This document shows positions 7,884 through 52,921 of a stretch of DNA of 64,000 bases, piece after piece; position 1 is the stretch's first letter, and the number at the start of each line of letters is the position of its first letter. The notes below the pieces were generated by a model that worked only from the letters and a program-made list of their open reading frames with translations, ran no database searches and was not told the DNA's origin. This stretch comes from Adineta vaga (lineage: Eukaryota; Animalia; Rotifera): positions 5,022,001 to 5,086,000 of the forward strand of contig CP075496.1 in assembly GCA_021613535.1 (NCBI GenBank). Reading direction: 5' to 3'. The position numbers and the translations under genes are program-made.

Positions 7884-9377
7884 ATGGTCGAAGAAAGAGT
7901 GAAGTTATGTGATGATTATGTATTTCAATGTTCGATTTGTTGTAATGATATTAATGATCAAAAGAATGTTTATCAAATTGAATTATGCCATTGTCAATTT
8001 TGTAAAGAGGTATTCCAATTTTAATTATTTAATCTATTCATTTAATTATTTCTTGTTTCTAGTGTGTTCGTCAGTATTGTTCCAGTCAAATAAATACCGC
8101 GTAAGATGATAAAATTGTATTCTTAAGAATAGAATCCTTATTTGTATGTTTGTTTTTGTGTTTAGATCAGTACCAATTAGATGTCCGAACAGTGAGTGTG
8201 ATAAACAGTTTACATTAAATGAGGTATGAAATTTCAAACAAACATTTATTTGAAAAAAATTAAGAATAATTCTATTATTAGCTCCATGCTATTCTAACCG
8301 ATGCACAATATCAATTGTATACTAAATTCTTACTTGATCATGGTATTTTACTATTTGATCTTCTCTCGAAAAGATTCATTCATATTTTTTCTGTTCACCA
8401 AATTTATTTAGAAGTAACGAATGATCCTCAGCGTCTTTTTTGTCCACATGTTGATTGTGGTCATATATTATCCATAATCGATGAAAGAAAAGTCAATAAA
8501 GAACATCCAATGACTTGTACAAAAGTAAATTGAAAAATTCATTTTCTTGTAGAAAATTTTTGAATCGATTACTTTTACATAGTGTCAAACAACATTTTGT
8601 ATGAAATGTCGTTGTCGATGGCATCCAGATGAACATTGTTCTGATTTACTGTAATGATTTGAATAGTTAAAAAGAACATGTATGTGTAGATTTCATTTTT
8701 TTAGTACACCATATGAAATGGAACCTGATTCTAATATAAAACGTTGTCCACGATGTCGTTTTCCATTAGAATGGATAGCTGGTTGTGCACAGATCATGTG
8801 CGTCAATTGTAAACATATTTTCTGTTGGTACTGTTTAAAATCTCTTGATGTAATTATTGAAAATATATTCGTTCTCTTTGGTGAAATATAGCAATTTTCT
8901 TTGTTTAGAATGATTTCTTCTTATTACACTTCGAACGTGGGCCTTGTCGAAATCGGTGAGAGAACATTTCTATATTCTTTTCATAAATATTCTTATTTTT
9001 CGATTTCTAGACTTGGGCATTCACGTGCATCATTATTTCTTCATCGTTTAACAATTGTTGGTATTTTTATTGGTTTAACTCTTTTATTTCTTATCACTAT
9101 ACCATTCCTAATCTTAGCTGCACCTTGTTTATTATGTTGTCGTTATAAACAAATTAAAAATCGCCTGAAAAATCTAACGAAATTCGGACAACGTTTTCAA
9201 CAACAGCAGTATACTCCTACAACGCATCCTTCACCATCGTCTTCATTAAATCAATTGAATAGTTCATCATTAATTGACATCGAACAAGAATTAAATAAAA
9301 CTGTTCATAATCCATTATTATCATCTTCATCAACAATCAATCTCAATAAATCCAAAACTGAACTTGCATCCGTTTAA
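7884..9377 (+). CDS. RNF144: RBR (RING-IBR-RING) E3 ubiquitin ligase, RNF144-like, with C-terminal transmembrane segment
   Basis: CSICC..CHCQFC, LFCPHVDC, FCMKCRCRWH, IKRCPRC...GCAQIMCVNCKHIFCWYCL, HF..GPC.NRLGHSRAS, then a hydrophobic helix and AAPCLLCC. Confidence 0.9.
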
Positions 9378-35186: not shown

Positions 35187-36406
35187 ACATTATCAGTACT
35201 ACTACTAATACTGCTATTACTACTATAAGCAGCAATATCAAATATACAACTTTAAGTGGTAAGTATGACATTCTATGCTTTTTAGTATTCCTCAGAAAGT
35301 ACTGTAAGATAAATTTTGATAAATAATGTTTTATGATATTTATAGGCTATGAAACAGAAACAACACATGAAACTTCATCGTATTATTGGACAGAAGAAGC
35401 ATTACTAAGACGAGGAAGATCTTCGTTTTGTGCTGCACGTCTTGCAAACGGAAAGATTCTTGTTGCTGGTGGAAGGATCAATTCATCTGTTGTTTCATCG
35501 TCAGGAGAATTATATACATCGTATGAGGGATGGCTCGCAACACCGCTGATGAAAAACTTTCGATATTCCTATACTTTAACTGCTTTTGCGAATAGTACCA
35601 AACTATTAGCAGCTGGCTCGGCATATTCATCTGCTCTGCGAACAGCTGAAGTTTACGATAGTGCAACTAATTCATGGACATCAACAGCATCAAATATGTC
35701 ATACGGACGATATTCACATTCTGCTACACGTCTAAAAAATGATGAAATCATGATAATCGGAGGAAAATCCAGTGCAACCATCATTTACTCTACAGTTGAA
35801 ATCTATACACCATCATCAAATTCATTCACTGATATCAACAGTATGAATATGCCGCGCCATATATTTACAAGTACTTTACTCAATGATGGATCAACAGTAC
35901 TTGTTACAGGTGGTAATTACAGCAATAATGCAACAACATCAACAGCAGAATTGTACATTTCTGGTTCATGGGTATTTACGAACAATAACATGGCTCATCC
36001 TCGTGTATTTCATTCTGCTGTTCTTCTTAATGATGGAAATGTATTGATTGCTGGTGGTGGAAATGGAATCTCATTGTCATATTCAACGGCTGAAATCTTC
36101 AGTCCAACTACACGTACTTTTGCACCTGTTGTATCGATGAAATATAATCGAGCATTATTTACTCTTACATTATTACCATCAGGTAAGGTATTAGCAACTG
36201 GTGGTGTAGACTTGGCAACAAATACATATCCATTAGTGTGTGAATTGTATGATCCAGTGACTCACTCATGGTCGGATACATTGATGTTGAATGAAGGACG
36301 AACTTATCATGAAACGATTCTACTAAATGATACATCAGTGTTGACAATCAGTGGTTACAATGGTGAAAGCACCAGAATGCGCAGTTGTGAAAGATATAAA
36401 TTATGA
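35187..36406 (+). CDS. Kelch/galactose-oxidase-type beta-propeller protein, bacterial-like repeats; 5' end unresolved
   Basis: About six repeats of R..(H/F)...L.(N/D)G.VL(V/I).GG....AE.Y.P....W in one uninterrupted exon (35346-36406). An upstream Thr-rich exon 35187-35258 joins in phase (AGT G|GC TAT). Confidence 0.8.
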
Positions 36407-36905
36407 AAAAACTACTATATGAACTATTATTGAGGGTTTTATTCTCTTATTCAATAATCTTATGCTTTATTTTCATGTTTGCTTTGCTTCTACTTTCTCA
36501 ATCATACTGCTTATAGTGAAATATATTTAAGTTCAATATATTGAAGATAAATGTTTTATTCGAAGCAATTTTTAGAAATTTATTTATTAAATATAGATAT
36601 AAGCATATATCACCAACAATACAACGGTAAGAGAAGAAAAATCAACTCATTAGCCAAGCATATAAGCGGAATGTTAATTTTGAAAAAAAAAGAAGAGAAA
36701 AAACTAAAATTTCATTCGTCAATATCATTCATTGTTATCTAAAAGCAGACTGTTCAAAAGTGCACCTGACATGCAAAGAGAAAAGAATTACAGAAAAAGA
36801 GAAAATCACCATTATCTGATATTCGATGTAAACAGATCAGAAATAAGACATTCAAAACTCGAGATAGTGAAAGAGAAAGAGAGAAGAAGAGACAGATCAA
36901 AGTCT

Positions 36906-39900
36906 TTATTCGTTATTTGGTAGTAATAGTGAAACATTTTTATTCGAACCTTTACGAAATTCCACCTTATCAACACCACCTAGAATAATATTAATTACAT
37001 GTTTATGTTTATCGATTTGTGCTGAAACATATCGTTGAACATCAACTGTAAAGTTTGCTCTAGAAAAACAAAACTAAAATATACTAGAGATCAAACAACA
37101 ACAACATACGATTTGCGTTTGATTTTAGCAAGATGACCAACAAATTCACCGACACGATCCGTTTTTGTATGCATATAAAAGACTAGATCATTATTGGATA
37201 TTAAATGAACAACAATCAACTGTTCTTTGCCTGATGTAATACTTAAACCGACAATATCATTAACTGAAATACCAGTTTTCTTAATATGAAAACTCTTTTT
37301 TGGATCCAATTTATAGAGATATTTATCCGTGAGAACAATAGCACGTTCATCCATTTTAATATGACTATTCAACTAAAGAAATATTTAACATTTAATCATC
37401 GATTTCAATAACATTCATTGGTAAGAAACTATACTTTTATTGCCAATGTTGAGAACAAGACATGATTGAAAGCATCTTTACCACGAAGTTCACTGATTGA
37501 TTTTCGATATTCAAGAGAATGTGCATTTTCTTCTGGCTAAATAAATGTGTATAGATATTATCAACATAATCTTGTTTAATACTCTAAATCGAAGACGAAC
37601 TTACGAGATGTAGATAATCTCCTTTCCATTCTTGTCGTATACTTGATTCAAGAAATGATGGTCGTTGTTGAAGATAATCTCCTGCAAGTAATTTTAATTC
37701 AAATATTGCTCGTTGGTCAGCTGGTATTCGTTGTATAATTTTATATGCACGCCATCTTAGAAAAAAGAAAAGTTCAATAAATAATTATAACTAAAAATTA
37801 ATCTCTATGCTTTTATTTACCGTTGATACATTTGTTTGAGAAGATTATTCATCGGAATAAAACCTGGTTTTGGCGCAGGCCATCGAATATTTTTACCAAG
37901 ATCATGAGTATTTGCAACATTTCTGAAAAAAATATAAATTAAAACATTAACAAAAAAGATTTGATTATCTACTGGAATAGTTCGTTGAGTTTAGTGATAT
38001 AACTTCGTGCACGATATTTTCGATATGCATTTTGTATTTTAATTGCTGATATTTCACGACGAAATAAACGACATTGATGCCATGAACGCGTATACTATAA
38101 AACAAAATCATCATTTCTATTTCATATTTATTCATTTTCATCAAATTACTTTTTGAAGAATAGTAACAATAAATTGCAAACCTTCAGTTCGTTTTTTTTC
38201 CAATTGAAATAATGATATTCTATCAAAAACAAAACAATATAGAATAGAAAATTCCTATCTCTTTTTCAAAACATACGGTTGTTTGATAAATAGTTTTGTT
38301 GTACCATACGCAACATCATTATTTAGATTAAGTTCTTGACAAATATATGCAGCATTTTCTTTCGTAGGTGCTCCACGAGGATATAATCTCGATCGAACAG
38401 CATCGATAATTTTATATCTAAAATATGATAAATTATTTTAAAAATTTTTCAACGATTTTATAATTCTACCTTTGAACAAATCGATCGTATGGTGCTCGAT
38501 GACAAAAACCTAAATTACATTTTATATTTATAATATTAACATAAAAATAAGATCTATTTACCTGCTCGACGTACACGAACATTCTCTAATAAACCAAGAT
38601 AAGCAATTTGATGTTCTACTCGTCTTTGATCAAATAAATTTGCAGATTTCTCATCATTTGGTTTGATACAACGTACATAAAATGGTTGCTAAACATACAT
38701 AGATCAATGAATGTAAATATATTGAAGAAATATTACTTTCGATGAAAGAAGAGTCGATAGACTAATCATTGAATTTCGAAAAATAGTTCCTGCCGTTAAT
38801 GGTCGTCGTGTAACTGACGTAATGCTTTTTTCACCTTCAGGCCACATGGATGAAATAATCGAATTATGACTATGATATAACAAACGCTTGAAATCATCGA
38901 ATAAAGTATCACGATTTTTATCGAGAAAACCATCGACAGAATAAATAACATCACCTACACAAAAATCATAGATCGTTTTCTCAAAGATCAAATCATAAGT
39001 TGAAAATTACCTGCATAATGTCGAATAAGAAATAATTTATTATTATTGATATTTTTCCATGTTTTATCTCCAGGTGCAAGCTAAGAAATCAAATAGTTAA
39101 GATAAAATTAGAAAAAATAAGTATTCTTACTGCCCAACTCGAATAATGTTTATGATTTTTCAATGCTTTATTGATTGAATCGAGAAACATTTCATCAGTT
39201 ATTGTTCCTACAGTTTGACAAGCTTCATCCAGATGTGCTAAAATGCCTGTTCGTGATTGTTCAATTAGATCACAAATGATTTTATTATTGAAATAATCAA
39301 CCTAATTACATTAAAACTATATCAATTCATATGAAAGAAATAATAAGATAACATACATGTTGCCAAGTAATATTTTCTCGTTCATATTCTTCTTGTTCTT
39401 GTTTAAGAACAAGTTCAATAAATAATTGTTGTAATTTTTCATTACAATAATTAATACACATTTGTTCAAAGCTAAATATTCAAATCGAAAAAAAGAAAAT
39501 GATACTTTCTTTCGAAAGAATGAAATTATACCTATTATTTTCAAAGATTTCAAAACCATATATATCCAAAACACCAATTACAAGTGAACTTTGAATAGTA
39601 TGATGTGCTGAATCATTTGCTTCTTTTGATAGAGTTTTATTGATATATTTAATTAACCATTCGAATAAACGTTCGTACAAAGCCTAAATAATCACGAAAA
39701 ACAAACAAATATAAGTATTGTACATATTTGACTAAAATTTAAAATCATGCAAAAAAAAACAGAACACTTGACATGAATAAGTAAATACGTCAAAACAGAG
39801 CATGCGTATATTTCTTGTTTTCGTCTAGAATTTCTTACCAAAATAGTAGAAAAATTGCCTATTGTTTAAGATAGAAAACGGACTTGTTCTCCGATAGAAA

Positions 39901-41251
39901 ATCGCTTACTTTACTCAATGCATCTGCCCATGATGAGCACGTGTGATATTTTGTCGTGCTTGTATAACTTCATTTCGTGCTGCAACAACACGTGAAGTTA
40001 ATGCTGAAGAAATCTTTTCTTCTTCACATGATAATAATTTTGATATCCATGTTAATTGATCATTATTATCATTTGATCGCGTAATAGAACAATGTTCACC
40101 ATCGACATCCGTAAATTTTAAATTACCCTGAATGAAAAGAGAAGACATTTGATTGATTAGGATGAAGCAAAATGATTTACAAGATGAAGAATTGCTGCGA
40201 CTATTTTCCATACTGTTGAGATTTCATCTGGAGTAAAACCAACAACTTTAAAAGCTTGTTTCAGTTGTTGATAATCACGTTTATCATCAATTTTTGCAAC
40301 TCGACAGCAATTTCCTTGATTAATATAATGATAATCTTCCGCTCGAATATTTAAACCATACTCTTGTAAATTACTTTCTCCAAATAATAAATGATAAAAA
40401 GAATGAAAATTTCGTTCACCTAATTGTTGTTTCACAACACGAGATTTTTCCAAAAGATAATGTTGAATTTTTCCACCAATTGGATCAAATTTATAATCAA
40501 AATGTAGATCCATATATTTACCAAATCGACTACTATTATCATTTCGATTGGTTCGACTGTTACCAAATGCTTCGAGAATAACATTCGTTTGAATAAGAAT
40601 ATTACTAATTCTAAACGGACGAATAGTGAGCAATGAATATGAATGAAATGTTTATATTACCGTTGAATTTCGGTTTGATTAGATACATTTGTTACTGCTG
40701 CAATATAGCGAAGAATGATTTTCGAAGCTTCAGTTTTACCAGAACCAGATTCACCTAAGAAAACAATTGTAAACTATTCATTTATTCTACGATATTCAGT
40801 GAGAAGCCAACCTGAGATAACAATACAACTGTTCAATGAACGTTGTTTTAAAGTGCGATAGGCCGCTTCAGCAAGAGCAAAAATATGCGCAGGTCGTTCA
40901 AACATTTCACGTCCTTTGTAACTTTTGATATATTCAGGTCCATAGATAGGTAAATCACGATACGGATTGACACTAACCAATACCTAGATGATTTCAAAAT
41001 AATCAATGTATAGTTTTCGTATAGAAAACTATCGAAACTTACTTCACCAATGTAAGTATAAATTCGACCTTTTTCAAATCTAAATCAATGAGAAAAGGAT
41101 GAAAGCGTTTATTGTTGTGCAAGAGAGAATGACAAACAACATACCGTATTTTAAGATTTCGAATAAATGCATCCATTGTAATTTCGGATAGTAGAACAAA
41201 ATCACCAACACCCATATCGGGTCCTTCATTCTCAATCGAACCTGCTGCCAT
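36906..41251 (-). CDS. MYO1D: Unconventional myosin class I, Myo1D/G (Myo31DF)-like; one apparent frameshift near 39925
   Basis: [68 protein letters not shown] motifs and a TH1 tail. Confidence 0.93.
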
Positions 41252-41388
41252 CTGAAAGAATAAGAAAAGAGTATATGAATAAATCTTTATACATTTATGA
41301 TTGTTATTCAAAAATGATTCATCCTTTGAGACAGGAAAGAAAGAGAGAAAGAAAATGATTTATCACTCTATGTTGACTCATTTTTCAT

Positions 41389-41766
41389 TTATCCTCGAGA
41401 ATTTTTAATAAGATTAGTAAATATTTCTTGTTGTTTTCGTAGCTCTTCTCGATAATATTTTTGCCATTGAGAATTCACATGTTTCCAATGTTGTATATTA
41501 TGTTCACGTAATGTAGTAAAATTATTTTGGTCAATAATACAATCATCATGTTCTTGTTTAAGATTATTTACAAATTCATTTAAACGAGAATTATCTTCAT
41601 TAGGAATATTTTCTATTTGAATATATTGAGAGTGATCATCCATTTGTCGACTAACAGATGCATATTGTCGAATAATTGAATACAATTGTTTTCCATTTGC
41701 TGTAAAACCGTTTAATGAAATCGTTTCTTGTGTTCGTTGAAATGGAAAACGACGATTTTTTGTCAT
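41389..41766 (-). CDS. Small intronless hypothetical protein (125 aa), predicted helical C-terminus
   Basis: Open frame from MTKNRRFPF to ...LREHNIQHWKHVNSQWQKYYREELRKQQEIFTNLIKNSRG*, preceded by an acceptor (tttttctag|aaaagATG). Confidence 0.7.
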   Translation of the reverse strand: MTKNRRFPFQRTQETISLNGFTANGKQLYSIIRQYASVSRQMDDHSQYIQIENIPNEDNSRLNEFVNNLKQEHDDCIIDQNNFTTLREHNIQHWKHVNSQWQKYYREELRKQQEIFTNLIKNSRG

Positions 41767-41921
41767 CTTTTCTAGAAAAAAATGATTAACAAAATACATA
41801 TATATTGCACTTGAATATGTTAAAACAATTCATTTCAATAACAAAATTAATCTGTGAAAAAAATATAGATAAATCATCATATCACAATAAAAAATATTCA
41901 CGAATATAGAAAAATATAAAA

Positions 41922-44900
41922 TTACACAGTAAGAATTGATTTACTAAAAATTTGTTCAAGTTTTTCTTGAACTTCACCTAAATATGGTCGTTGAGATGGT
42001 TGAGAATCCCAACATTTCGTCATAATTTCCCAGCAATCATCTGTAAACATACTTAAACGTTCCGGACGAACACCTTGTTTGACTTTCGACCAAAGAACAT
42101 CTTTCGATGAACACACATCAAAATTATTCGGTAATTTTATACCATTTGAACATATATACCAAAATAAAATACCAAAGGCATAAATATCTACTGTATGATC
42201 ATATTTAGATGTAAATAATTCCGGTGCCATATGAATGGGTGTGCCAACAAGCGAACCACTCATCATAACCTCGGGTTTACAAAAACCGAGGTCAGTTATA
42301 CGTGCATGATTGTCTGCATCCAACTAATATAGAATAAACGATAAATCTTGAGAGACAAGGTAGTTCGATAGACTAAAAGCTCATTCGTAATACTTTCAAG
42401 GAGAATTTTCTTTTTCTTTAACGATAACGAATATACTCGGTATATCTTTGAGATATTAGCACTTCTCATTTCTAACAAGCAGACACTTACCAGCACATTC
42501 TTTAGCTTGATATCTCGATGAACTAATCCTAAACCATGCAAGTAACGTAAACCTTCGATAACATCCAATGCGATACGAATTCTACACAAATCAATTTCTT
42601 TTTCATTGAATGAACAAATTGAAAATCAAATACCTGATTTGAAATGGAAGTTTGTTCTTTAATGCTATATGTAAATCTTTAGCGAGTCGTTCCATTACAA
42701 GTAATACTGGGGTTTGATCACGATAGGTATAATCAATCACAGATCCAATTAACTTCACAACTCGTGGATGTTCAGGAATTCGTCTAGAGAGAAAAAGAAA
42801 CAGACGAATTCTCGATCAAACAATCTATTCAATGAAAAAAACGTTACCTCAAATAATGAAATTCCAAGGCTAAATCATTCCAATGTCGATCATCTGGTGG
42901 CATGACAGATTTTAATACACAAGAACGTTGATTAGCCCAACTTTCGCATTCATAAACTACTCCATATTGTCCACGACCAACTTCTCGACCTTGTTTAGGT
43001 AGATCATATTGAATAAGATCTTTCAATGATGTACTTTCTAATAGATGTCGAGCAATTCTAGGTGTAAAATCTTTTCGTACACGTTGTTGTTTATCTTCTG
43101 TCCATTTCAAACGATCCGAATGTCGATGTTCTAGTTGTTTAAGTAATGTTTCAAAATTATTATGTGACATACGTATACGATCATTCAATTGCGTACAAAC
43201 ACTTTTCGCCAATCTGAAGAGAAGAAAAAAAGAAATCAATGTAAAGAAATTTCTCTATGTGAAAAAAGTTACTTGGCTTCATTCAGATTTTGTAACATAT
43301 TCATGGCTACAGAACGTTTAAATTCCGGATCAATACGTGGACAATTACTCCAACTAAATGTTCGAAAGAGCTTAAGAGAGAATACAATTACATAAAATAA
43401 TAAAAGAAGTAATTGCAAATAAATTACTTCTTTCATTCGATCGATCAATAGTTTAAATAGATTGGAATTCGTTGGTAGAGAGAGTTCACTTGATACGCCG
43501 ATTGAAGTATCTTCAAAATAAACACGAAAAAATTTAACAGGATATTTTTGAATGCAAATCATACTTCTTGTAAAGCTTTGCTTGCTGATGATTGCGTTTC
43601 ATCATCATCCTTGCTAAATTCCAGATTTTGAATACAACGTGTTAATGTTCCAACGTAATCTTGATGTAAAATACTAACTGAACATGAAAGTTTATCGGCT
43701 ATTGCACGATTTAATCGATCAAGAGCAAAATCTTGAATAACACTTGTACATTTTTTTAAATCACGGGCGGTTTTAACGGTTAATTCATCGGTCAATTCAA
43801 TTCCTAAATAAAATCAATAACATAAATTGTGTGTGCGTAATTCGAATTAGGAGATGTATATGTCTCTACATCGTGTACGAAGAAATTCTCGAAATACGAT
43901 ACTTCTCTCTACTTTTGATATCTTTACATACATACACCTGTCAGAACAGAGGAGAAGAAGCAATCAAGTGCATCAATGATGGCTCAACAGAAGAAAAGAA
44001 AAAGATAGTAACCTATCATGAATCGAATCTTCATATAATTACGAATAGAACAGAAAGATAAAGAGAGTGAAATAATGACGTCATATTGTATTACGATTGA
44101 ACTGTACATACCTGATATTTCTAACGAACAAGCTTGATCAACTAATGATTCTTGAATATCATTAACTGCTTGTAAAATTAATTTTTGTATTTCAGCTTGT
44201 CGAGAATTTGTTAGAGCAACTAATGAATCATACAATTCTCGTTCTTTCTCATGTGCATAACTTATTCGTTTTGGTGTAATAAGAATATCTCTAAAGAAAA
44301 CATAACAATCGAAATATAATTTATAGAAAATATGTCTTTGACATTTACCTTGCCATATCAAATGCACTATCATTGAAAAAATCAAGACAAAGTTCATGTG
44401 ATCGTTGTATAATACTCACTGAACGAAGAGAGATTTTCTTTTTTGAAATAATTTCAAAAGTTCTTTACCTGCTCGAATTGTTAATCGATCCACATGTTTT
44501 CGAATATAATTTAAAAACGAAGTAAAATTGCTTAATCCATTATCAATCATATCACTTTCGAATCGAGATAATGCAGTTTCACTTGGTTCACTTGGCTGAT
44601 AACAATGATCTGTTGTCAATATCGATACAAAACCCAGATCACATAATTGTCTGATCGAAAAAAGTTTTCTTTTAGTTGAAAAATATAACAAAATAAATAA
44701 CTACCGAAAAATGTGCACACAGGGTGTTTCACCGACCATTGAAATTGATTCATTTGTTCTACAATTGAAATAGAGTTTCAGAAGAGAAAAGAAAGCTATG
44801 TTGAGATTGTTACAAATCTTTCTGATCCATTCGAATGAATAAAAACGGTTGATTTGGTGCCAATTTATGAAATAATTGTAATTCTTCAATATCATGATCT

Positions 44901-46121
44901 AATAATTTCCCTTGATCAATGATATAAATAAAAATAGGAACAATATTTTCTGTCATTTGCGAATATATTTGTGCAACATTCATCTTTTGATTTGTTGGTG
45001 TAATTAGAATTTGTAAGTTATTACCAAGTAAATCCAAAGGTTTTCGTATTTCTAAAGAAGCCGTTTCATCTTGATCATTATCATCTACATGAGAACTGGC
45101 TTCTTTCTCATCAGTTGCAACAATTGATTCACGAGGAACAGTTAACCATGAAACGGATCGTTGAACACCATTCGTATCAAGAAGTTCAAATGAACCAGAT
45201 ATATTCAAAGTAGTACCTGTAGTTTGATGATGCTAAAAAAAAGAAGAAGAAAATAGCATGTCATGTTTCTTTTTCTGCACTTTCATAGCTCATTGAACAG
45301 TCCTATATAAGATTTATGAACTTATATAAAAGAAAAGATCATGTAATTTAGAGAGTCAGATAGGTTGAGATATGTACAGATGACTAACGATGTCATTATC
45401 CGATTAGTTAGTATGAAGAAAGAGACTAAGAGATTATAAATCATCGACACAAAATGGTGATCATGTTACTAGTGTGCAATGTCTAAATACGTTCGTCTTC
45501 ATTTTATATCGTTAAATGATTTTAACTCATGCGTAGATTTTTAGATTTCTTCATCTTAGAATAATCCGCGCGTGTGAGAAACTTTTTCTTATCACAAGAT
45601 AGAAAGGTCTATATAACTCAACAAATAATTGACCTCACATGTTCTTATTCAGTTCAATAAATTGATTATTCAACTACAATTTTACCTTGATACGAATCAT
45701 GCGTACAACATCATTTTGTTCGATAATAGGTGATTCTGGTAGTAATGGTTCGTTCAAAAATTCATTGACAAAACGAGCTTTTCCATTATAACTTTGCGAA
45801 CAAATGATCAATGCTAGTGTTTTAGAAGATAAAGAATTAATGTATTCACGATCGAACGTCGAAATCTTAATCTCAGAAAATTTGTCTAGAAGTCAAAAGG
45901 AATAAAAAAATAAAATGAAGTTGGAAAACAAAATTTGATATACCAGATGTAAGAATACTTTTATCATCGATTTCACGATAGGCTTTATCAGTGTCTTCCA
46001 ATAATCGTGTGATGTATGAGCAATGTTTTTTATATCGTTTAATAATTTTGGCGAAGTCTTGAGTAAATATAGATGAACTACTATTATGTTGCGTCACTGT
46101 TGTTGCAAATCTATCTGTCAT
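41922..46121 (-). CDS. DSTYK: Dual serine/threonine and tyrosine kinase (DSTYK/RIPK5)
   Basis: [18 protein letters not shown]; GRGQYGVV; [21 protein letters not shown]; [10 protein letters not shown]; [27 protein letters not shown]. Confidence 0.96.
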
Positions 46122-46131
46122 TGTTTTATCT

Positions 46132-46139
46132 GAAAGAAA

Positions 46140-46171
<32 letters not shown>

Positions 46172-46172
46172 A
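46132..46172. repeat. (GAAA)n/(TTTC)n tract forming the polypyrimidine tract upstream of the DSTYK acceptor
   Basis: gaaagaaaaagaaagaaagaaagaaagaaagaaagaaagaa directly adjoins the minus-strand tttcag|ataaaacaATG. Confidence 0.75.
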
Positions 46173-46337
46173 AAACAACAAACAGAGAATGTACGATCGA
46201 ATAAATTTCTACTCAATCAGAGACCAAAATAGAGAAGTTTGAGTAGAATATCAAACACAACATACAGAGATAATATATTTGTATATATACAAATGAAAAT
46301 TTCTTTCTTATTTTGTTTTCTCTCTCACACTTTTTCT

Positions 46338-48159
46338 CTAAGATTCTGGTGTATGTTCAGGAGACATTTGCATATTATTATCATCCGGTTTTGTTATAGA
46401 CGATGAATCATTATTAAGACTTTCAAGTCGTTTTTGTACATCTTTGAGCAAATCAAACTAAAATCAAAAGATTTGATGATGAAATTTTTTTGTTCATTAC
46501 AAAGAAAAGTCAACGACAATAACTTACAATACGACCAACTTTTTCTGTTTGATATGAAGGTAAATTTTCAAAAGGTAAATGATCACAAATGCCTTGTTGA
46601 AATTGATCTCGAGTAGGTAATTGTTGTGGTATATTTAATTTTGGTGTACTACTATTAAACATCCATAATGGTGTACCAGACACTTGCCCAAGACTTTTTT
46701 GTTCATAATTTGTAGCTGCTGCTGCTGCTGCTGCTGTTGCTGTTGTCGAATGTCCTTGATCAGTTGATATTGTTGGTGAAATTGAGTTATTTGTTGAAGA
46801 TGTTTTCATTTGTTTTGGAGTATTTAATTCTTCAATCGGTGTTGGTTTATATGTTTCCAAAGTTGATTTTCGTTTGAGTGAAGGTTTCTTTAGAAGATAC
46901 ATTTCTTCGATAAGATTTTCTTTACTTTGTTGTTTATCAAATGTTGGTAAATTTGAAGATGTGTATGCTTCATCAATGAAACCATCTGGTAATGGAACAT
47001 TAAAACCTGCATAAGAAACAACTTTATCGAAATCATATTCATAACTCTCTTCATTATTTAAATCAGCTTGAGTTTGCATATTATCTTCTAATAATGCGCC
47101 TGGAAAAACATTGTCTTGACCAGTTGGATCGATTGGTTCCGATTTTTTTGTTTCAATAATTTCGCCTTAATGAAAAAAAATAAAGACATTCAAATAAAAT
47201 GATTTCTTTTTCATGCAATACCTTCTTCATTGTCATGAAATACTTGTAAACCAGATTTTTTCACGCGTGCTTCACGTAACCATCCAGGTGGATATCCACA
47301 TCGACGCATATTATAAATATACATTGGAATTTGATTATCACGTAATCCTAATGCTTGTCGTAGTTCATAACCAATCATACCAGGTTGAAAACGTCGAAAA
47401 CGTTCGTCAATAATAACTTGATCATGTAAACTTGATTGATATGAATCTTCATGATAACGACTTGCTGGTTCGTTACTATTTCCATATCCACCACCATTCA
47501 TTTGTGATAGATCATTATAACCACAAGCTTCAGCCATTTGCTCTTGATATTGTTCTCGACTACGACGAATACGTTCACTATCTAATTTCATTGGACAACC
47601 ATGAACACCATGATCTGATGCACCACAATTAAAACATGATGGTTTAGGTCGACGTGCTCGTTGTAACGAAGCATGTTGTTCACTATCAGGTAAAGCAATT
47701 CGATAGACTTGTTCATAATCTGGTATGAACCAACCTTGTTGTATAGCACCAACATTAAATGAAGATAATTCATCACCATTTCTATCAACAAAATAATTGT
47801 CATAATATTCGAGTGGAGCTAATTTTGATACTAATTCTGTTTGTGCTTCAGGTGGAAGATTTGATCGTTGAAGACGCATTTCATCAATAAATTGACGAAA
47901 ACTTCGTTCCAATTGTATCTAAACAAAAAAGAATTAAGATTTATTTTTATCACAAGAAATCCAAAGTCTTTCTTTCCCTCTCTCTCTCTCTGTCAAGATA
48001 ACATGTTTTGTGATGACGTCGATGACAAGATCATAGATCACCTACTTTTTTATCATAATCATGTTTGTCCAATTTAATTGAGCACGTAAATAATGGTGGA
48101 TTATCTGTTGTCGTTCGATTATTGTTGAATATAGAAGGAATATCACCATCGTCGTTCAT
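46338..48159 (-). CDS. ZCCHC8: NEXT complex zinc-knuckle protein ZCCHC8
   Basis: WFIPDYEQV; CFNCGASDHGVHGC; SRYH; RFQPGMIGYELRQALGL..QIPMYIYNMRRCGYPPGWL (PSP domain); SYAGFNVP; DHLPFENLP. Confidence 0.93.
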
Positions 48160-48349
48160 GATTAGTTGTTTTTTAATATCTTCAAAGATAAAATGCTAGA
48201 ATATTTATTAATGTCACTAAAAACTACAAAGAAGAAGAGTAAATACAATCAAACTCTAGTACAACATTTATATGACATAAAATATACGATAAAAAGTTTT
48301 GAAAAATGAGATAAATTTCTGTTTCATTCTGAAATATTTGACGTAAATT

Positions 48350-48962
48350 TCATTGCTTTCGTGGTTGATTAAGAAAACGTTGATCATCATGTTTTGAATG
48401 ACTATGAAAATCATGTTTAGGATGTACACCAGGCTTGTCATGAATATGTTTTACAGATTCTGTTGGAAAAGCCTTTTGAACCTATATTTTCAAAAGAAAA
48501 ATAAAAGTAAGATATTCTGATGACTATTCAAATGAGTTACATACAGGAACAAAAGTTCCAGAGACCATCTGACCAGCAACACGATTTGATAATGCTCTAG
48601 AAATAGATGAATTAGAAATATTTAAAATTAAAAGTTATGTTTGTAGAAACCGTGATTCTTGTGTATCATCTACATCTTCACGACTGTAATTTCCAGTTGA
48701 TCTTTCTTTACTACCATCACTTGTATTATCTCCTGTTATTTCTTCACTAGTCATGCTTTTGTCCTTATCATCACCCTGTGATGTTTGTCGAGGACGCCCT
48801 GCACCAACACGCATGCCACCAACTCTTACTATGAAAAGAAAAAACAAGATTGTTGTCTTCTTATTAAAATTATATTAATAAAATGATTTTACAAGCAGGA
48901 GCATGGCCAGCTTTGAGTTCAGATGAACTAGACGTATCTGTTGATGATGTATAATCCGACAT
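48350..48962 (-). CDS. DAP: Death-associated protein 1 (DAP1/DAPL1), 4 exons
   Basis: SELKAGHAPA|.RVGGMRV at the N-terminus and FPTESVKHIHDKP...RFLNQPRKQ* at the C-terminus. Confidence 0.88.
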
Positions 48963-50811
48963 GTACAATATATTCGACAATGAGTAAAGAATAAAAACAA
49001 TGGAATTGAATAATCTGAAAATATATATATTCATAGATTATTGAAAAAAAATATTTATTTGTATAAATTCTATGCATTAGAAGATATCATATTTAAAAAA
49101 GCAATCTATTAAAATGACAGCCTTGTCTTCTTCTTCCTCCATCGACAATTGTGTTTAGTTAACTTTCATTCGTGCTTATTATTGACCAATACCATTACTT
49201 GTTTGTTTGGGGATTAATTTATACTTTATATTATTGATATTTGAACTAACTGTCATTCGATTAAAAGAAATAATCTATCTATACTGTTGTTTTTTCCTAA
49301 TTCGTGTGAAATCTCAACAAATTCTTCTCTTATTGATAATGACAAGACTTTTTTCAAGAAAAAGATAACAATAGTTGATGATGATGATGCTGCTCAATTT
49401 AACATCTAGATTGAGATGTCCTTGTGTTAAATGTTAAAAATGCGATGTCATTCAATCATTTTTATGTATATTTACAAAATACTAAATCGTCCGGTTTCTT
49501 CCACGATGGTCGCCTTGATGGGTAAAGCATACATTCCAATCAATTGAGATCGATTGTTCTACAATACTTTTATTCAATCAAACCAAACTTCGTATTATGT
49601 AGACACATGATCGAAAACTAACGAACATTGAGGGAGTGTTTCATAATGAACAAAGATACTTTCAATAAGTATAATTTTATTGAGGTTTTCTGAAAATTAG
49701 GAGTTGTTCAATATGTAACATTCTATCAAAAATTTATTTACGTAGTTGGTATGATACTTCTCTTTTTATCAAACGTATTAATATTTATTTTGGTAATCGT
49801 ATTGTTTCACGGCTGCACTGAAGGATCATTTGAATTGGCATACCTATCAAAAGCTCTAATGAATTTAGCTTTCAGTAAAATAGTTGATATAACATGTTAG
49901 AACGAATAGAGAATATTTCAGTAGAAGTGAGATTAAAATGAAAACAGAGTTACGAAATACTATCCTGTACCCTTTTCAAAACAAAGCCTTTGCTGATAAG
50001 ACTGGATACTAGCTGTCTTCACTTGGATGAAGTTTCGAGGGCATAAATCTTTCTTTTGCTTCATAGATAATGTATACGTCGATACTTAAAATTTAAGAAG
50101 AATTGCAATGAAAAAGTCTTATCAGAACGAAAAAACATACAATCTTTCGTTTATACTTAGTCATACAGATTTCAATCAAAAGAACTAGTATTTAACATCT
50201 TTCACTGCGAGGTTCACAAGTATAATAGCAGACCAACATAGTGTAATGTTATTTTGTTTCTTTTAGTAAACAAAAACAGTAAAATTTTATTGTACTATCA
50301 AATAATTAAAATGCTTGTTGTAGATTCTACTTCTTTCTACATTTTATTTCTCCACTCAAGTTGATGTACAGCTAAAAGTCACCAACGTAATAATCTTGAT
50401 CAACTCCTAGCAATATAAAATCAAATCGCTTCGAACTTTAATTGATAGTGTACTGTATTCGTTAAAAATTTGAACTGAATTCTATCAACAATGTGCGTTG
50501 AAAGCATATCATAATACTTTTGTATTGTCGTCTCGATTTTGTCGAGATCTTATGTAGTTGGAGGTATGTTCGATATAGTCGATCGTTATTATATTTATGT
50601 ACATCATTCTTGTGAATTCGTTTACTCTTTACAGAAAAAGAAAAAGAAAAATGGTCGAATTAATACAACAATCATACAATGTATAAAAAAAAATGGACGA
50701 TATACTCAGATCTGATGAGAGATAATGGACACTTATGAGAATAAATATGACAAACACATAGAAAGAAATAACAACATCTACACGATCTGTACAGTGAGCT
50801 AAGATTTTTCT

Positions 50812-51784
50812 TTAGAAATTTTCTCCTTGCAAAAGTCCATCGATCATCGTCAACTGTTGTTGTGACCAGAAATGATTTTGTTGAATATTCCAATCATTCG
50901 TTTCAGATTTTAAATGATTACAATTATTCATTGTTTCTACCTGAGTATTCGTATTCATGGAGATTCCATTCGAATAATTATTTGTCGATAAAACATGTGT
51001 ATTGTCTATATTTAATGTTTTCATATTTTGAGTTAATTCATCATCGGAGACCATACATGAACCTGATTCTTCTCCATCACTATATGCTTGATGTAAATCA
51101 CCATCATTATCATTTTTATATAATGGACACCATGTACCTTCATCACCAAAGCAAACGGCTACTTCACCTGGATCTAAACATAAATTATGCATAAATTAAG
51201 TGAATATTTTAACCTTTTGTTCTACGAAATGTAATGATTATTGAAAAAATGTTTTGTGTGTCGTTTGATTTCTATATGAAAGCAACGACAGAATAGATCT
51301 AATTCATCTCTGATCGACTAGAAATTTGATTCCACTCATCTGAAATTTGATCCATATAGAAAATGTTTTAAATCATTACAATATGTTTCTATCTCGACTC
51401 ATTGAAAGATAAAAACTGAATCTTACCAATCCACATAGTGAACATAACTGGTAAATATCGATGAAGTGGTAGACGAGAACGTTCAGCGATTGATTTTAGA
51501 ACTGGATCTTTCCAATGCTTTGTTTGTAAACATCGGTATGCACTTCCACGATGTGGGGTTGCTGAAAGATTTAAAAAAAAGACCAGTTCAATCGTTTTTC
51601 TTTACATAAACTTTTTTTTTGAATCTTTACCTGGAAACCAATGTCCAATAAAACGTTTCAATAAAACATCATGAAAAGTACGTTTAAAAACATTGATTTG
51701 GTCGGGTGACAACTCTACATGTGGTTTAATTAATCGCAATAAATAACTACAAGCAATGGCGAGTTCTTTTCGTGGATGTGTCAT
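50812..51784 (-). CDS. BTG: BTG/Tob family antiproliferative protein, 3 exons
   Basis: KELAIACSYLLRLI...LLKRFIGHWFP|ATPHRGSAYRCL...LPVMFTMWI|DPGEVAVCFG (boxes A and B). Confidence 0.9.
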
Positions 51785-52921
51785 TATTTTAATAATGACA
51801 GATAAGAAAAAAAAATCAATCTAAAATAATAATCAATGAACTTATCAAAACGAAATCTTCTAGTCAAAATGTGAACTATTACATAGATCGATAATCATCT
51901 TAACATATCTCGTCATTTTTTTTTCTTGTCATATAAATGACAGACAATGAACGAACAGGTGAACAGATGGCGACTTGTGTACACATAGACAAAGGACAAG
52001 AGAAGAAAAAAAGTATGTATACGAAATACTAGACAATAGAAATCGATTTCATTCGTAGTTTGATCTATATTTAAAGACGAAATGAAGAGATTTCATAAAG
52101 ATAATACATCTTATTTCACCGTAAACCTGTTGATTATGTCAATATTTTTTTTATCAATATGAACTAATGAAAAAAATAAAGAAGAGAAAAAAAAGAGACG
52201 AATCCAGTCGTATTAGTTAGTATAAAAAGACGATCAATTAGTAATCATTTCTTTAAAAATATTGAATATGGTATATTTATGAAATCTTGTACGAATACGA
52301 TACGAGGAGAAGATATAAAATAAGTGGCTATATGGCTAAATCTGAATCTATCGATCTATCTGAAAGATGAACAGAGACTGTTTCGATGACTCATTCATAA
52401 TCATCTGATGCGGATTTGATGAGTTAAATGAATGAAACCAAGCAAGTAAATCTTAATGTAAAATGACAGTATAGTTTTATTTTAGAAATAGTTTTAGGAG
52501 AAAAACGAATATATGATTTCAATGAATAGATGTCACTAATATCAATCAAACTAATTACATATAATGAGGAAAAAGTGAAGGAATCTGTTCGTCAATAATG
52601 GTGGGTATTACATGAAAATGTATGTGTGAATATGGCGAGAGTTATATATATGTAATATCTTCGCATTTAGTAAATGAAATTCTATTTTTTCGTTATTGAT
52701 CTTCATTGACAAATTTCATTTTTGTTTGTAGATTTGGGCAACAATAAGAGTGTCCTCGTTCAAAATCATTATCTCTGCGGAAGCTCATGTCGTTTGGTAA
52801 AATCTTATTTGATCATCCGACGAGCAACGGCTAGCTCGCTATTAAAATCATTTTTATTGTCTTTTATCAACTTTTTTCATAAGATTCTTTGAAAAATTTT
52901 CATTCAAATATTCTTTCTACA

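Follow-up and report, generated by a model that had tools for sequence, protein, structure and literature searches.

A conserved head-to-tail cluster of five genes in bdelloid rotifers is a candidate spliced-leader-resolved operon

Five functionally unrelated genes lie head to tail on the minus strand of a 64,000-nt stretch of Adineta vaga DNA (hereafter, the window) in the order DAP1, a ZCCHC8-like gene, a DSTYK-like kinase gene, a 125-aa open reading frame (ORF), and a class I myosin gene. All four stop-to-ATG gaps that separate them finish with a pyrimidine tract and an AG. One operon of the nematode type is probable because the gaps are short, the acceptors are conserved, and the layout is kept across bdelloid genera. 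On balance, we lean toward the five genes forming, at least in part, a conserved operon resolved by spliced-leader (SL) trans-splicing.

Layout of the five-gene cluster

The genes of the cluster, in the direction of transcription, are as follows.

48350..48962, minus strand: DAP1 (death-associated protein 1), four exons; ATG 48962, stop TGA 48352-48350
46338..48159, minus strand: ZCCHC8-like gene, with a CCHC zinc knuckle and a PSP domain; ATG 48159, stop TAG 46340-46338
41922..46121, minus strand: DSTYK-like kinase gene, with a C-terminal kinase domain; ATG 46121, stop TAA 41924-41922
41389..41766, minus strand: small single-exon gene of 125 aa, a probable divergent LIN37 (MuvB/DREAM subunit); ATG 41766, stop TAA 41391-41389
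36906..41251, minus strand: class I myosin gene, with head and TH1 tail; ATG 41251, stop TAA 36908-36906

The stop-to-ATG distances measure 190 nt (gap 1, DAP1 to the ZCCHC8-like gene), 216 nt (gap 2, to the kinase), 155 nt (gap 3, to the small ORF), and 137 nt (gap 4, to the myosin). An initial annotation of this DNA had described five co-directional genes with short gaps, and a re-reading of the stops and ATGs returned the same lengths. A convergent gap has room for two 3' ends and contains no promoter; the four in the window are about 242, 275, 403, and 499 nt long, all longer than each gap of the cluster, and divergent gaps extend over about 650–1900 nt. In published data, the median distance between genes is 0.8 kb for A. 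vaga and 1.4–2.7 kb for Rotaria (PMC5916493). With four gaps far below the 0.8 kb median and lengths conserved across genera, the layout exceeds what chance would be expected to produce.

An Rfam search of positions 36000–52500 found no ncRNA family. Two AG-ATG sites flagged by an automatic codon-usage map of the window, at 8910 and 60244, proved to be ordinary cis introns.

Identity of the encoded proteins

For DAP1, the ZCCHC8-like gene, the kinase, and the myosin, domain searches were run exon by exon. The last DAP1 exon alone gives a weak match to the Pfam DAP family, and its orthologues in A. steineri and R. sordida carry a PF15228 entry. The ZCCHC8-like translation contains a C-x2-C-x4-H-x4-C knuckle followed by a PSP domain (58.4 bits, E 5.6e-16); CFNCGASDHGVHGCP was read in this gene, which is single-copy in the haploid assembly, with one genomic match only. 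The last exons of the kinase match Pkinase and PK_Tyr_Ser-Thr, the name DSTYK itself being putative. Its orthologues in A. steineri and R. sordida are 898–904 aa long and carry a C-terminal kinase domain, and one N-terminal exon displays weak GTPase/dynamin-like features (score below 0.9). The myosin belongs to class I, with a Myosin_head match (8.3e-55) in the window and Myosin_TH1 listed for the orthologues; an AATAAA (36910-36905) overlaps its stop codon. At the level of domains, the PSP/CCHC-bearing ZCCHC8-like gene, the kinase, and the class I myosin are borne out, and DAP1 through its orthologues.

The small ORF is evidently a real gene conserved in bdelloids: it has 18 homologues at 50–61% identity, with 32 invariant columns in the alignment, and at the sequence level these come from bdelloids only. 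It is present in one genomic copy, with dN/dS of 0.29–1.0. An Atlas feature search returned LIN37 clusters (score 0.93, 198/256 features in common), and PF15306 (LIN37) matches at 15.3 bits, under the Pfam gathering threshold of 27 bits. The same family scores sub-threshold in all 12 of the 12 aligned members, with a best E of 5.4e-5. Because of the Atlas score and the sub-threshold PF15306 matches, we call the protein LIN37-like, a probable relative that falls short of established membership in the LIN37 family.

Conservation across bdelloids

A. steineri (gaps of 212, 205, 152, and 150 nt) and R. sordida (215, 223, 161, and 134 nt) both have these five genes, arranged in the same order. From A. 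vaga to R. sordida, the spans of the ZCCHC8-like, kinase, and myosin genes increase from 1822, 4200, and 4346 nt to about 2360, 5970, and 5760 nt with about equal coding length, so the Rotaria introns have roughly doubled; the gaps changed by -2 to +13%. The gaps flanking the cluster range from about 1 kb to over 3 kb, and between species the cluster holds its order and spacing better than does the neighbouring non-coding DNA. The comparison with relatives suggested in the initial annotation fits its proposal, with all five genes kept in both species and no gap changed by more than 13% in Rotaria.

About ten bdelloid lineages keep the kinase, the LIN37-like gene, and the myosin together, with 136–161 nt in gap 3 (eight lineages) and 70–150 nt in gap 4 (ten lineages). 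Gap 4 is just 70 nt in lineage L022, which would leave no room for a separate promoter. Conserved gene order alone is weak evidence because microsynteny extends past the cluster, a Kelch-like neighbour also being kept in several lineages. The ohnologous copy in A. vaga has lost the ZCCHC8-like and LIN37-like genes and retains DAP1, the kinase, and the myosin in order, with gaps of about 550 and 470 nt left by the deletions.

Spliced-leader RNA genes

SL trans-splicing in bdelloids was described by Pouchkina-Stantcheva and Tunnacliffe in 2005, as cited in PMC1925144 and PMC3795323, and trans-splicing has been reported for more than 50% of bdelloid mRNAs. A search of the genome (100.8 Mb, 6 contigs) with the SL exon of 22–23 nt from PMC3795323, extended by a GT donor, revealed at least 58 SL RNA genes, against 0 matches for a control pattern. 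One typical SL RNA gene was read, and the genome holds a single SL family with minor exon variants. The matches and the literature reports together confirm the use of SL trans-splicing in bdelloids that the initial annotation had invoked. The SL was absent from the 11 homologue-bearing contigs searched, all of which are genomic, since they retain introns. Metagenome contigs were also scanned for the 3' end of the SL fused to the conserved start of the myosin; the five matches all fall inside unrelated coding sequence and are due to chance.

Acceptors and gap contents

The DAP1 acceptor and the four gaps contain the following elements.

49015..49030, minus strand: pyrimidine-rich acceptor atatatattttcAG followed across the boundary by ATTATTCAA, 53 nt before the DAP1 ATG; candidate trans-splice site
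48160..48349, minus strand: gap 1, with a conserved TTTATGTCATATAAA block, the DAP1 AATAAA (48209-48204), and AGs ending at 48196 and 48180
46122..46337, minus strand: gap 2, with, in downstream order, an AATAAG/AATAAA site, GU-rich TTTCATTTGTATATA..TGTATGTTGT, GAGTAGA..AATTCGATYGT, (TTTC)n, and a cAG ending at 46130
41767..41921, minus strand: gap 3, with conserved TATGATT, T7ACA, and AGTGCAATATATA, and the acceptor TTGTTAA..TTTTAG ending at 41772 (six-lineage alignment)
41252..41388, minus strand: gap 4, with TGAGTCA (41380-41374), GATAAATCATT (AATAAATCATT in relatives), a CT-rich run, and TCAAGGATGAATCATT (nine-lineage alignment)

At the DAP1 acceptor, all four copies compared (those of A. 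vaga, the ohnologue, A. steineri, and R. sordida) keep the AG and the ATT(A/G)TTCAAC that follows it. Gaps 2, 3, and 4 each show an invariant AG ahead of the ATG, and gap 1 also has one conserved AG. In gap 2, the tract consists of (TTTC)8.8 (TRF) plus the cAG, and both the GU-rich block and GAGTAGA..AATTCGATYGT are conserved. The gap 3 acceptor tttttctAG ends 5 nt before the ATG, and the gap 4 acceptor tctttcAG ends at 41252, directly abutting the myosin ATG. Gap 4 further holds ATAAATG and branch-point-like TTTAC/TTCAT, with TCAAGGATGAATCATT present as ATGAATCAT at 41322-41314.

All four acceptors of the initial annotation lie where it had placed them, but the one it chose in gap 1 is probably not the conserved one. 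The tattctAG ending at 48196 is kept in A. steineri and absent in Rotaria; the AG common to all three species is that of ctttgaAG (48181-48180). The DAP1 AATAAA is only about 23 nt ahead of the conserved acceptor. In the ohnologue, which lacks the ZCCHC8-like gene, the AATAAA block after DAP1 is kept and the TTTATGTCAT block of gap 1 is absent.

The gap alignments contain no conserved cis donor. A GTATAA near 41292, initially put forward as a possible cis donor, was discarded: it is 41 nt from the acceptor and occurs in only four of nine lineages. Pairing of the two gap 4 TGAnTCA motifs in an RNA hairpin was considered and rejected, as species with TGAGTCA have no compensating change in the partner motif.

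Promoter-like block and alternative arrangements

One further element lies ahead of the first gene.

49105..49208, minus strand: promoter-like block upstream of DAP1, aligned across A. vaga, its ohnologue, A. steineri, and R. sordida

Here, an inverted CCAAT box (ATTGG, 49190-49186) precedes GCTGTCATTTTA (49121-49110, initiator-like TCATTT) by about 73 nt. The block is 81% identical to the ohnologue (blastn), and the exact GCTGTCATTTTA motif occurs once in the window. Such a conserved CCAAT-plus-initiator-like block is found upstream of DAP1 only, among the five genes, and we interpret it as a putative promoter. Elements of the CCAAT or TATA type are missing from the inner gaps at any conserved distance expected of a promoter.

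The initial annotation had proposed one polycistronic unit driven from upstream of DAP1. The SL genes, the spacing, the acceptors, and the DAP1-only promoter-like block agree with this proposal, but conserved blocks in every gap qualify it. Each downstream gene is preceded by its own conserved 70–100 nt block, with TGTCAT-type motifs ahead of the ZCCHC8-like gene and the kinase, and two conserved TGAnTCA (bZIP-site-like) motifs ahead of the myosin. TCAT-type initiator-like motifs are found 66–98 nt ahead of four of the five acceptors, that of DAP1 in a clear promoter context. Since the ohnologue retains the blocks of the kinase and the myosin despite deletion of the gene upstream, the conserved gap blocks could be internal promoters, belonging either to a hybrid operon or to fully independent units.

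Five packed but independent units are the foremost competitor, which we consider possible though distinctly less probable than an operon. Each gene would have its own small promoter and a start 65–100 nt upstream of its acceptor, overlapping the previous 3' UTR, and a short outron would be trans-spliced; the overlap of 3'-end signals with promoter elements would keep the spacing conserved. Gene-specific conserved blocks in every gap, the initiator-like motifs, and the blocks retained in the ohnologue after upstream gene loss are all consistent with such units, as are the two TGAnTCA motifs before the myosin, which show no compensatory change pointing to an RNA stem. However, the gaps are shorter than the space that two facing 3' ends take up elsewhere in the window, one lineage has a gap 4 of 70 nt, promoter elements of CCAAT or TATA type are missing from the inner gaps at a conserved distance, and none of the TCAT, TGAnTCA, GCTGTCATTTTA, and ATGANTCAT motifs is enriched in the window. 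Precedent also argues against this arrangement: in other animal phyla with SL trans-splicing, gene clusters whose gaps stay below about 250 nt have proved to be operons.

A partial or hybrid operon, in which only the kinase, the LIN37-like gene, and the myosin are co-transcribed and DAP1 and/or the ZCCHC8-like gene are separate, or in which internal promoters supplement the operon, appears unlikely. Gaps 3 and 4 are indeed the shortest and are documented in about ten lineages, the DAP1 AATAAA lies just 23 nt before the conserved gap 1 acceptor, and the absence of TTTATGTCAT from the ohnologue without the ZCCHC8-like gene fits a ZCCHC8-specific start element; in the three measurable species, however, the lengths of gaps 1 and 2 are no less conserved than those of gaps 3 and 4.

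Chance packing of a compact genome (about 300 genes per Mb in A. vaga; PMC5916493), with no functional meaning to the layout, is already unlikely because of the cross-genus conservation and becomes very hard to credit with four successive gaps all far under the median intergenic distance, gaps within 13% in Rotaria despite doubled introns in the same genes, a Rotaria downstream flank of more than 4 kb without a called gene next to gaps that stay short, and conserved sequence blocks inside the gaps.

Discussion

In the operon that we favour, transcription would start at the CCAAT-plus-initiator-like block, about 100–190 nt upstream of the DAP1 acceptor, and RNA polymerization would continue through all five genes. 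The 5' end of each mRNA would be the 22–23 nt bdelloid SL, trans-spliced onto the conserved AG before the ATG, with receiving AGs ending at 49015, 48180 (or 48196), 46130, 41772, and 41252. Cleavage and polyadenylation within the 137–216 nt gaps would generate the upstream 3' ends, and internal promoters may contribute, as in nematode hybrid operons. We infer joint transcription, SL use of the acceptors, and the poly(A) site positions from features read directly in the DNA, namely the cluster layout, its cross-genus conservation, the SL RNA genes, and the conserved acceptors.

SL-resolved operons are known in nematodes, tunicates, flatworms, chaetognaths, and some protists. The cluster resembles C. 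elegans-type nematode operons (SL2 or SL1) in its unrelated co-directional genes, in an intercistronic spacing of about 100–200 nt, and in the succession of an upstream poly(A) signal, a U/CU-rich stretch, and a strong acceptor near the next ATG. It differs from them in having one SL family, and to our knowledge bdelloids have no operon-specific SL. The distance of about 23 nt between the poly(A) signal and acceptor of gap 1 is nearer to SL1-type or tunicate operons. As in tunicates (Ciona, Oikopleura) and chaetognaths, one SL class would serve both monocistronic and operonic genes across very short gaps, although the bdelloid stop-to-ATG gaps exceed the near-zero spacing of Oikopleura. Tunicate and chaetognath operons are backed by transcripts, whereas co-transcription of the bdelloid cluster, also in comparison with nematodes, is a prediction from the DNA. 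In chaetognaths, operons have been defined by a distance of less than 250 bp between genes, at least one of which bears the SL (PMC12460157).

The 23-nt SL exon present in at least 58 genomic copies is the same as that of the reported bdelloid trans-splicing; the 2005 work, as far as it is cited in later papers, reports no rotifer operons or polycistronic RNAs, unlike the arrangement proposed here. The 2021 SLIDR/SLOPPR paper (PMC7986045) likewise gives no operons or polycistronic RNAs for rotifers and notes that no such operon had been described before, and our literature search, including the period after 2021, found no report of a rotifer operon.

We see an even chance that the cluster is an ancient operon, older than the Adinetidae/Philodinidae split, and one case of a genome-wide bdelloid operon system with a single SL class, tolerance of inner-cistron loss, and possibly gene-specific intercistronic elements. 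If true, a conserved bdelloid operon would bring an independent animal lineage into the debate on the joint origin of trans-splicing and operons, and would have consequences for bdelloid gene annotation and promoter mapping. Because one of the ohnologous copies has shed two inner genes, it would also offer a defined locus for studying the fate of an operon after genome duplication.

Organization of the gene cluster

The window covers 5,022,001–5,086,000 of contig 4. Reading positions 52500 to 36400 on the minus strand and tabulating every stop-free stretch revealed five consecutive minus-strand genes in an AT-rich window (G+C ~30%) with short introns. The open frames are:

48962–48350, minus strand: DAP1 (ATG 48962, stop TGA 48352–48350)
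48159–46338, minus strand: ZCCHC8-like gene (ATG 48159, stop TAG 46340–46338)
46121–41922, minus strand: kinase gene, ~900 aa (ATG 46121, stop TAA 41924–41922)
41766–41389, minus strand: single-exon ORF, 125 aa (ATG 41766, stop TAA 41391–41389)
41251–36906, minus strand: class I myosin gene (ATG 41251, stop TAA 36908–36906)

The stop-to-ATG spaces, numbered gaps 1–4 from DAP1 to the myosin gene, measure 190, 216, 155, and 137 nt, matching the values from which the initial annotation had proposed a five-gene operon. All four pyrimidine-AG sites (acceptors) lie where it placed them before the downstream ATGs, and its observation of the cluster layout is sound.

Pfam searches of single exons, not joined into spliced models, matched PSP (5.6e-16), myosin head (8.3e-55), and kinase domains, and DAP weakly; annotated orthologues bear DAP, PSP, Pkinase, and Myosin_head plus TH1. 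The name DSTYK was given to the kinase by the initial annotation; the Pfam support obtained here is for kinase domains, and we refer to the gene as DSTYK-like. Two kinase introns on the minus strand, 45233–45676 (~445 nt) and 43814–44106 (~290 nt), are unusually long against the ~55 nt typical of this genome, and the counterpart of the first reaches ~1050 nt in the related contig L035. An Atlas search of the N-terminal region outside the kinase part of the protein (44813–45232, minus strand) returned weak dynamin/GTPase-like features (score 0.88, below the lead level of 0.9). At the other end of the cluster, an AATAAA (36905–36910, minus strand) overlaps the myosin stop codon, and more AATAAA occur ~320 nt downstream (near 36580–36590), close to the end of a convergent Kelch-like gene (stop 36406).

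The 125-aa ORF (41389–41766, minus strand) is a genuine gene. Eighteen homologues match it at 50–61% identity, those carrying a species name being from A. steineri, R. sordida, and Rotaria sp. Silwood1, and an alignment of 12 contains 32 invariant columns and zero frame breaks. Pairwise dN/dS ranges from 0.29 to 1.0, so the ORF is fast-evolving yet remains open. An Atlas feature search indicated LIN37 (score 0.93), and all 12 aligned members match Pfam LIN37 sub-threshold (best 5.4e-5). The product is probably a divergent, bdelloid-conserved LIN37, a MuvB/DREAM complex subunit, and is called LIN37-like because its Pfam matches are sub-threshold.

Conserved order and spacing

The initial annotation had called for a comparison with related genomes, and the five genes recur in identical order and orientation in A. 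steineri and R. sordida.

Stop-to-ATG gaps (nt) between consecutive cluster genes
A. vaga (the window): gap 1, 190; gap 2, 216; gap 3, 155; gap 4, 137
A. steineri: gap 1, 212; gap 2, 205; gap 3, 152; gap 4, 150
R. sordida (three assemblies): gap 1, 211–215; gap 2, 222–223; gap 3, 160–161; gap 4, 133–134

Seven more bdelloid contigs, found in metagenomes and among Logan assemblies, likewise link the kinase, LIN37-like, and myosin genes; gap 3 spans 136–161 nt and gap 4 70–150 nt over the lineages. Gene spans served as an internal control for gap constraint: the ZCCHC8-like, kinase, and myosin genes cover 1822, 4200, and 4346 nt in A. vaga versus ~2360, 5970, and 5760 nt in R. sordida. Protein lengths are near-equal, so that intronic DNA is roughly doubled in R. 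sordida relative to A. vaga, whereas the gaps differ by only −2 to +13%. Flank distances differ widely between copies and species. The distance from BTG to DAP1, ~1850 nt in the window, falls to 986 nt in A. steineri and reaches ~3300 nt in the ohnologue (the second cluster copy, on contig 1 of A. vaga); in R. sordida, more than 4 kb downstream of the myosin gene holds no called gene. Because the Kelch-like downstream neighbor is likewise kept in several lineages, gene order alone is weak evidence; the specific signal is the constrained spacing, and the cluster layout is under selection.

Elsewhere in the window, four convergent pairs lie ~242, 275, 403, and 499 nt apart and divergent pairs roughly 650–1900 nt apart, all approximate distances with gene ends taken from open frames. 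Every cluster gap therefore falls short of the distances that, between convergent genes of the window, accommodate two 3′ ends without a promoter. The median intergenic distance is 0.8 kb in A. vaga and 1.4–2.7 kb in two Rotaria species (Nowell et al. 2018, PMC5916493).

Sequence anatomy of the gaps and the DAP1 upstream region

The ATG-adjacent AG is invariant in every lineage in gap 2 (TTTCAG/ATA), gap 3 (TTGTTAA..TTTTAG/), and gap 4 (TYTTKCAG/ATG). For gap 1, the AG that the initial annotation assigned at 48196 is present in the window but missing in Rotaria; the AG common to all three species ends at 48180 (TTTGAAG/AT). Only 23 nt separate this acceptor from a conserved DAP1 AATAAA (48209–48204), which is also found 3′ of DAP1 in the ohnologue. 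Gap 2 runs from an AATAAA/AATAAG soon after the stop through a conserved GU-rich block and a second conserved block to the pyrimidine tract, a perfect (TTTC)8.8 repeat before the kinase; the GU-rich block after AATAAA/AATAAG is the pattern expected of a candidate poly(A) site. Gap 4 holds AATAAATCATT (GATAAATCATT in the window), a CT-rich run, and a TCAAGGATGAATCATT..ATAAATG block, with a branch-point-like TTTAC/TTCAT ~22–28 nt before the AG.

Gap 4 also contains two TGAnTCA motifs (41314–41322 and 41374–41380, minus strand; ATGAGTCA and ATGAATCAT) that resemble bZIP/AP-1 sites. Most bdelloid lineages retain them; compensatory changes are absent, as is enrichment within the window.

The GTATAA at 41292, raised by the initial annotation as a possible cis donor, was rejected: it sits 41 nt from the acceptor, and of 9 lineages just 4 have GT there. 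The lineage alignments of the gaps showed no conserved cis donor.

Upstream of DAP1, comparison of four genome copies (A. vaga, its ohnologue, A. steineri, and R. sordida) identified a conserved block in which an inverted CCAAT box (ATTGG, 49190–49186) precedes GCTGTCATTTTA (49121–49110) by ~73 nt, and a DAP1 acceptor, TTTTCAG/ATTATTCAA, ending at 49015. This block looks like a normal promoter followed by a ~100-nt outron. The inner gaps show no CCAAT element with similar, conserved spacing.

Spliced leader genes

The rotifer spliced leader (SL) exon (PMC3795323, Table 1) ends in ..ACTTACCAAGAG. In the 100.8-Mb haploid assembly of six contigs, on which genome-wide counts were taken, this exon followed by a GT donor has 58 matches versus 0 for the reversed control, and the single copy inspected is a typical SL RNA gene. 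In the part of PMC1925144 that cites a 2005 paper, more than 50% of bdelloid mRNAs are stated to bear the SL. SL RNA genes are often paired head-to-head ~157 nt apart, as at ~2.551 Mb on contig 1 (L008:1347–1523). Exon variants TTACAAC, TTAAAAC, and ACAAATT occur, and pairs often combine one canonical and one variant copy.

The ohnologue and the operon model

At ~7,727,000–7,742,000 of contig 1 (L004, L005), the ohnologue keeps BTG, DAP1, kinase, and myosin in unchanged order and orientation, the DAP1–kinase–myosin part lying at ~7.731–7.741 Mb. Their exons are apparently intact, and no detectable remnant of the ZCCHC8-like and LIN37-like genes is left. Having been lost there, these two genes are single-copy, and each occurs once in the haploid assembly. 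The remaining gaps measure ~550 nt from the DAP1 stop to the kinase ATG and ~470 nt for the other. Both retain blocks that belong to the downstream genes, TTTTTCAT..GAGTA..AAATTTATTGATTGT before the kinase and TCAAGGAT..ATAAAT before the myosin gene, evidence that cuts both ways. If a three-gene operon survives here, the blocks may be its intercistronic processing elements; gene-specific promoters for the kinase and myosin genes would persist likewise. It is less likely, though still of some weight, that the genes are wholly independent units whose promoters lie within the 3′ ends of the genes before them.

No RNA-derived contigs for the locus were found in an SL search of homologous contigs or an SL–myosin junction scan of metagenome contigs. 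Matches of 22 nt to SL plus myosin start (JGI contigs Ga0194133 and others, L028–L032) arise by chance and are not trans-spliced RNA: they sit within coding sequence (..HPTYQEMAAHHNAIV..), and all five samples carry it from a single unrelated organism.

The SLIDR/SLOPPR paper (2021, PMC7986045) states that operons or polycistronic mRNAs were not reported in rotifers, and we found no later literature report of one; a 2025 chaetognath paper (PMC12460157) mentions rotifers in describing how patchily trans-splicing and operons are distributed, but shows no rotifer operon. On the genomic evidence presented here, we lean slightly toward the A. vaga cluster being, at least in part, a spliced-leader operon.
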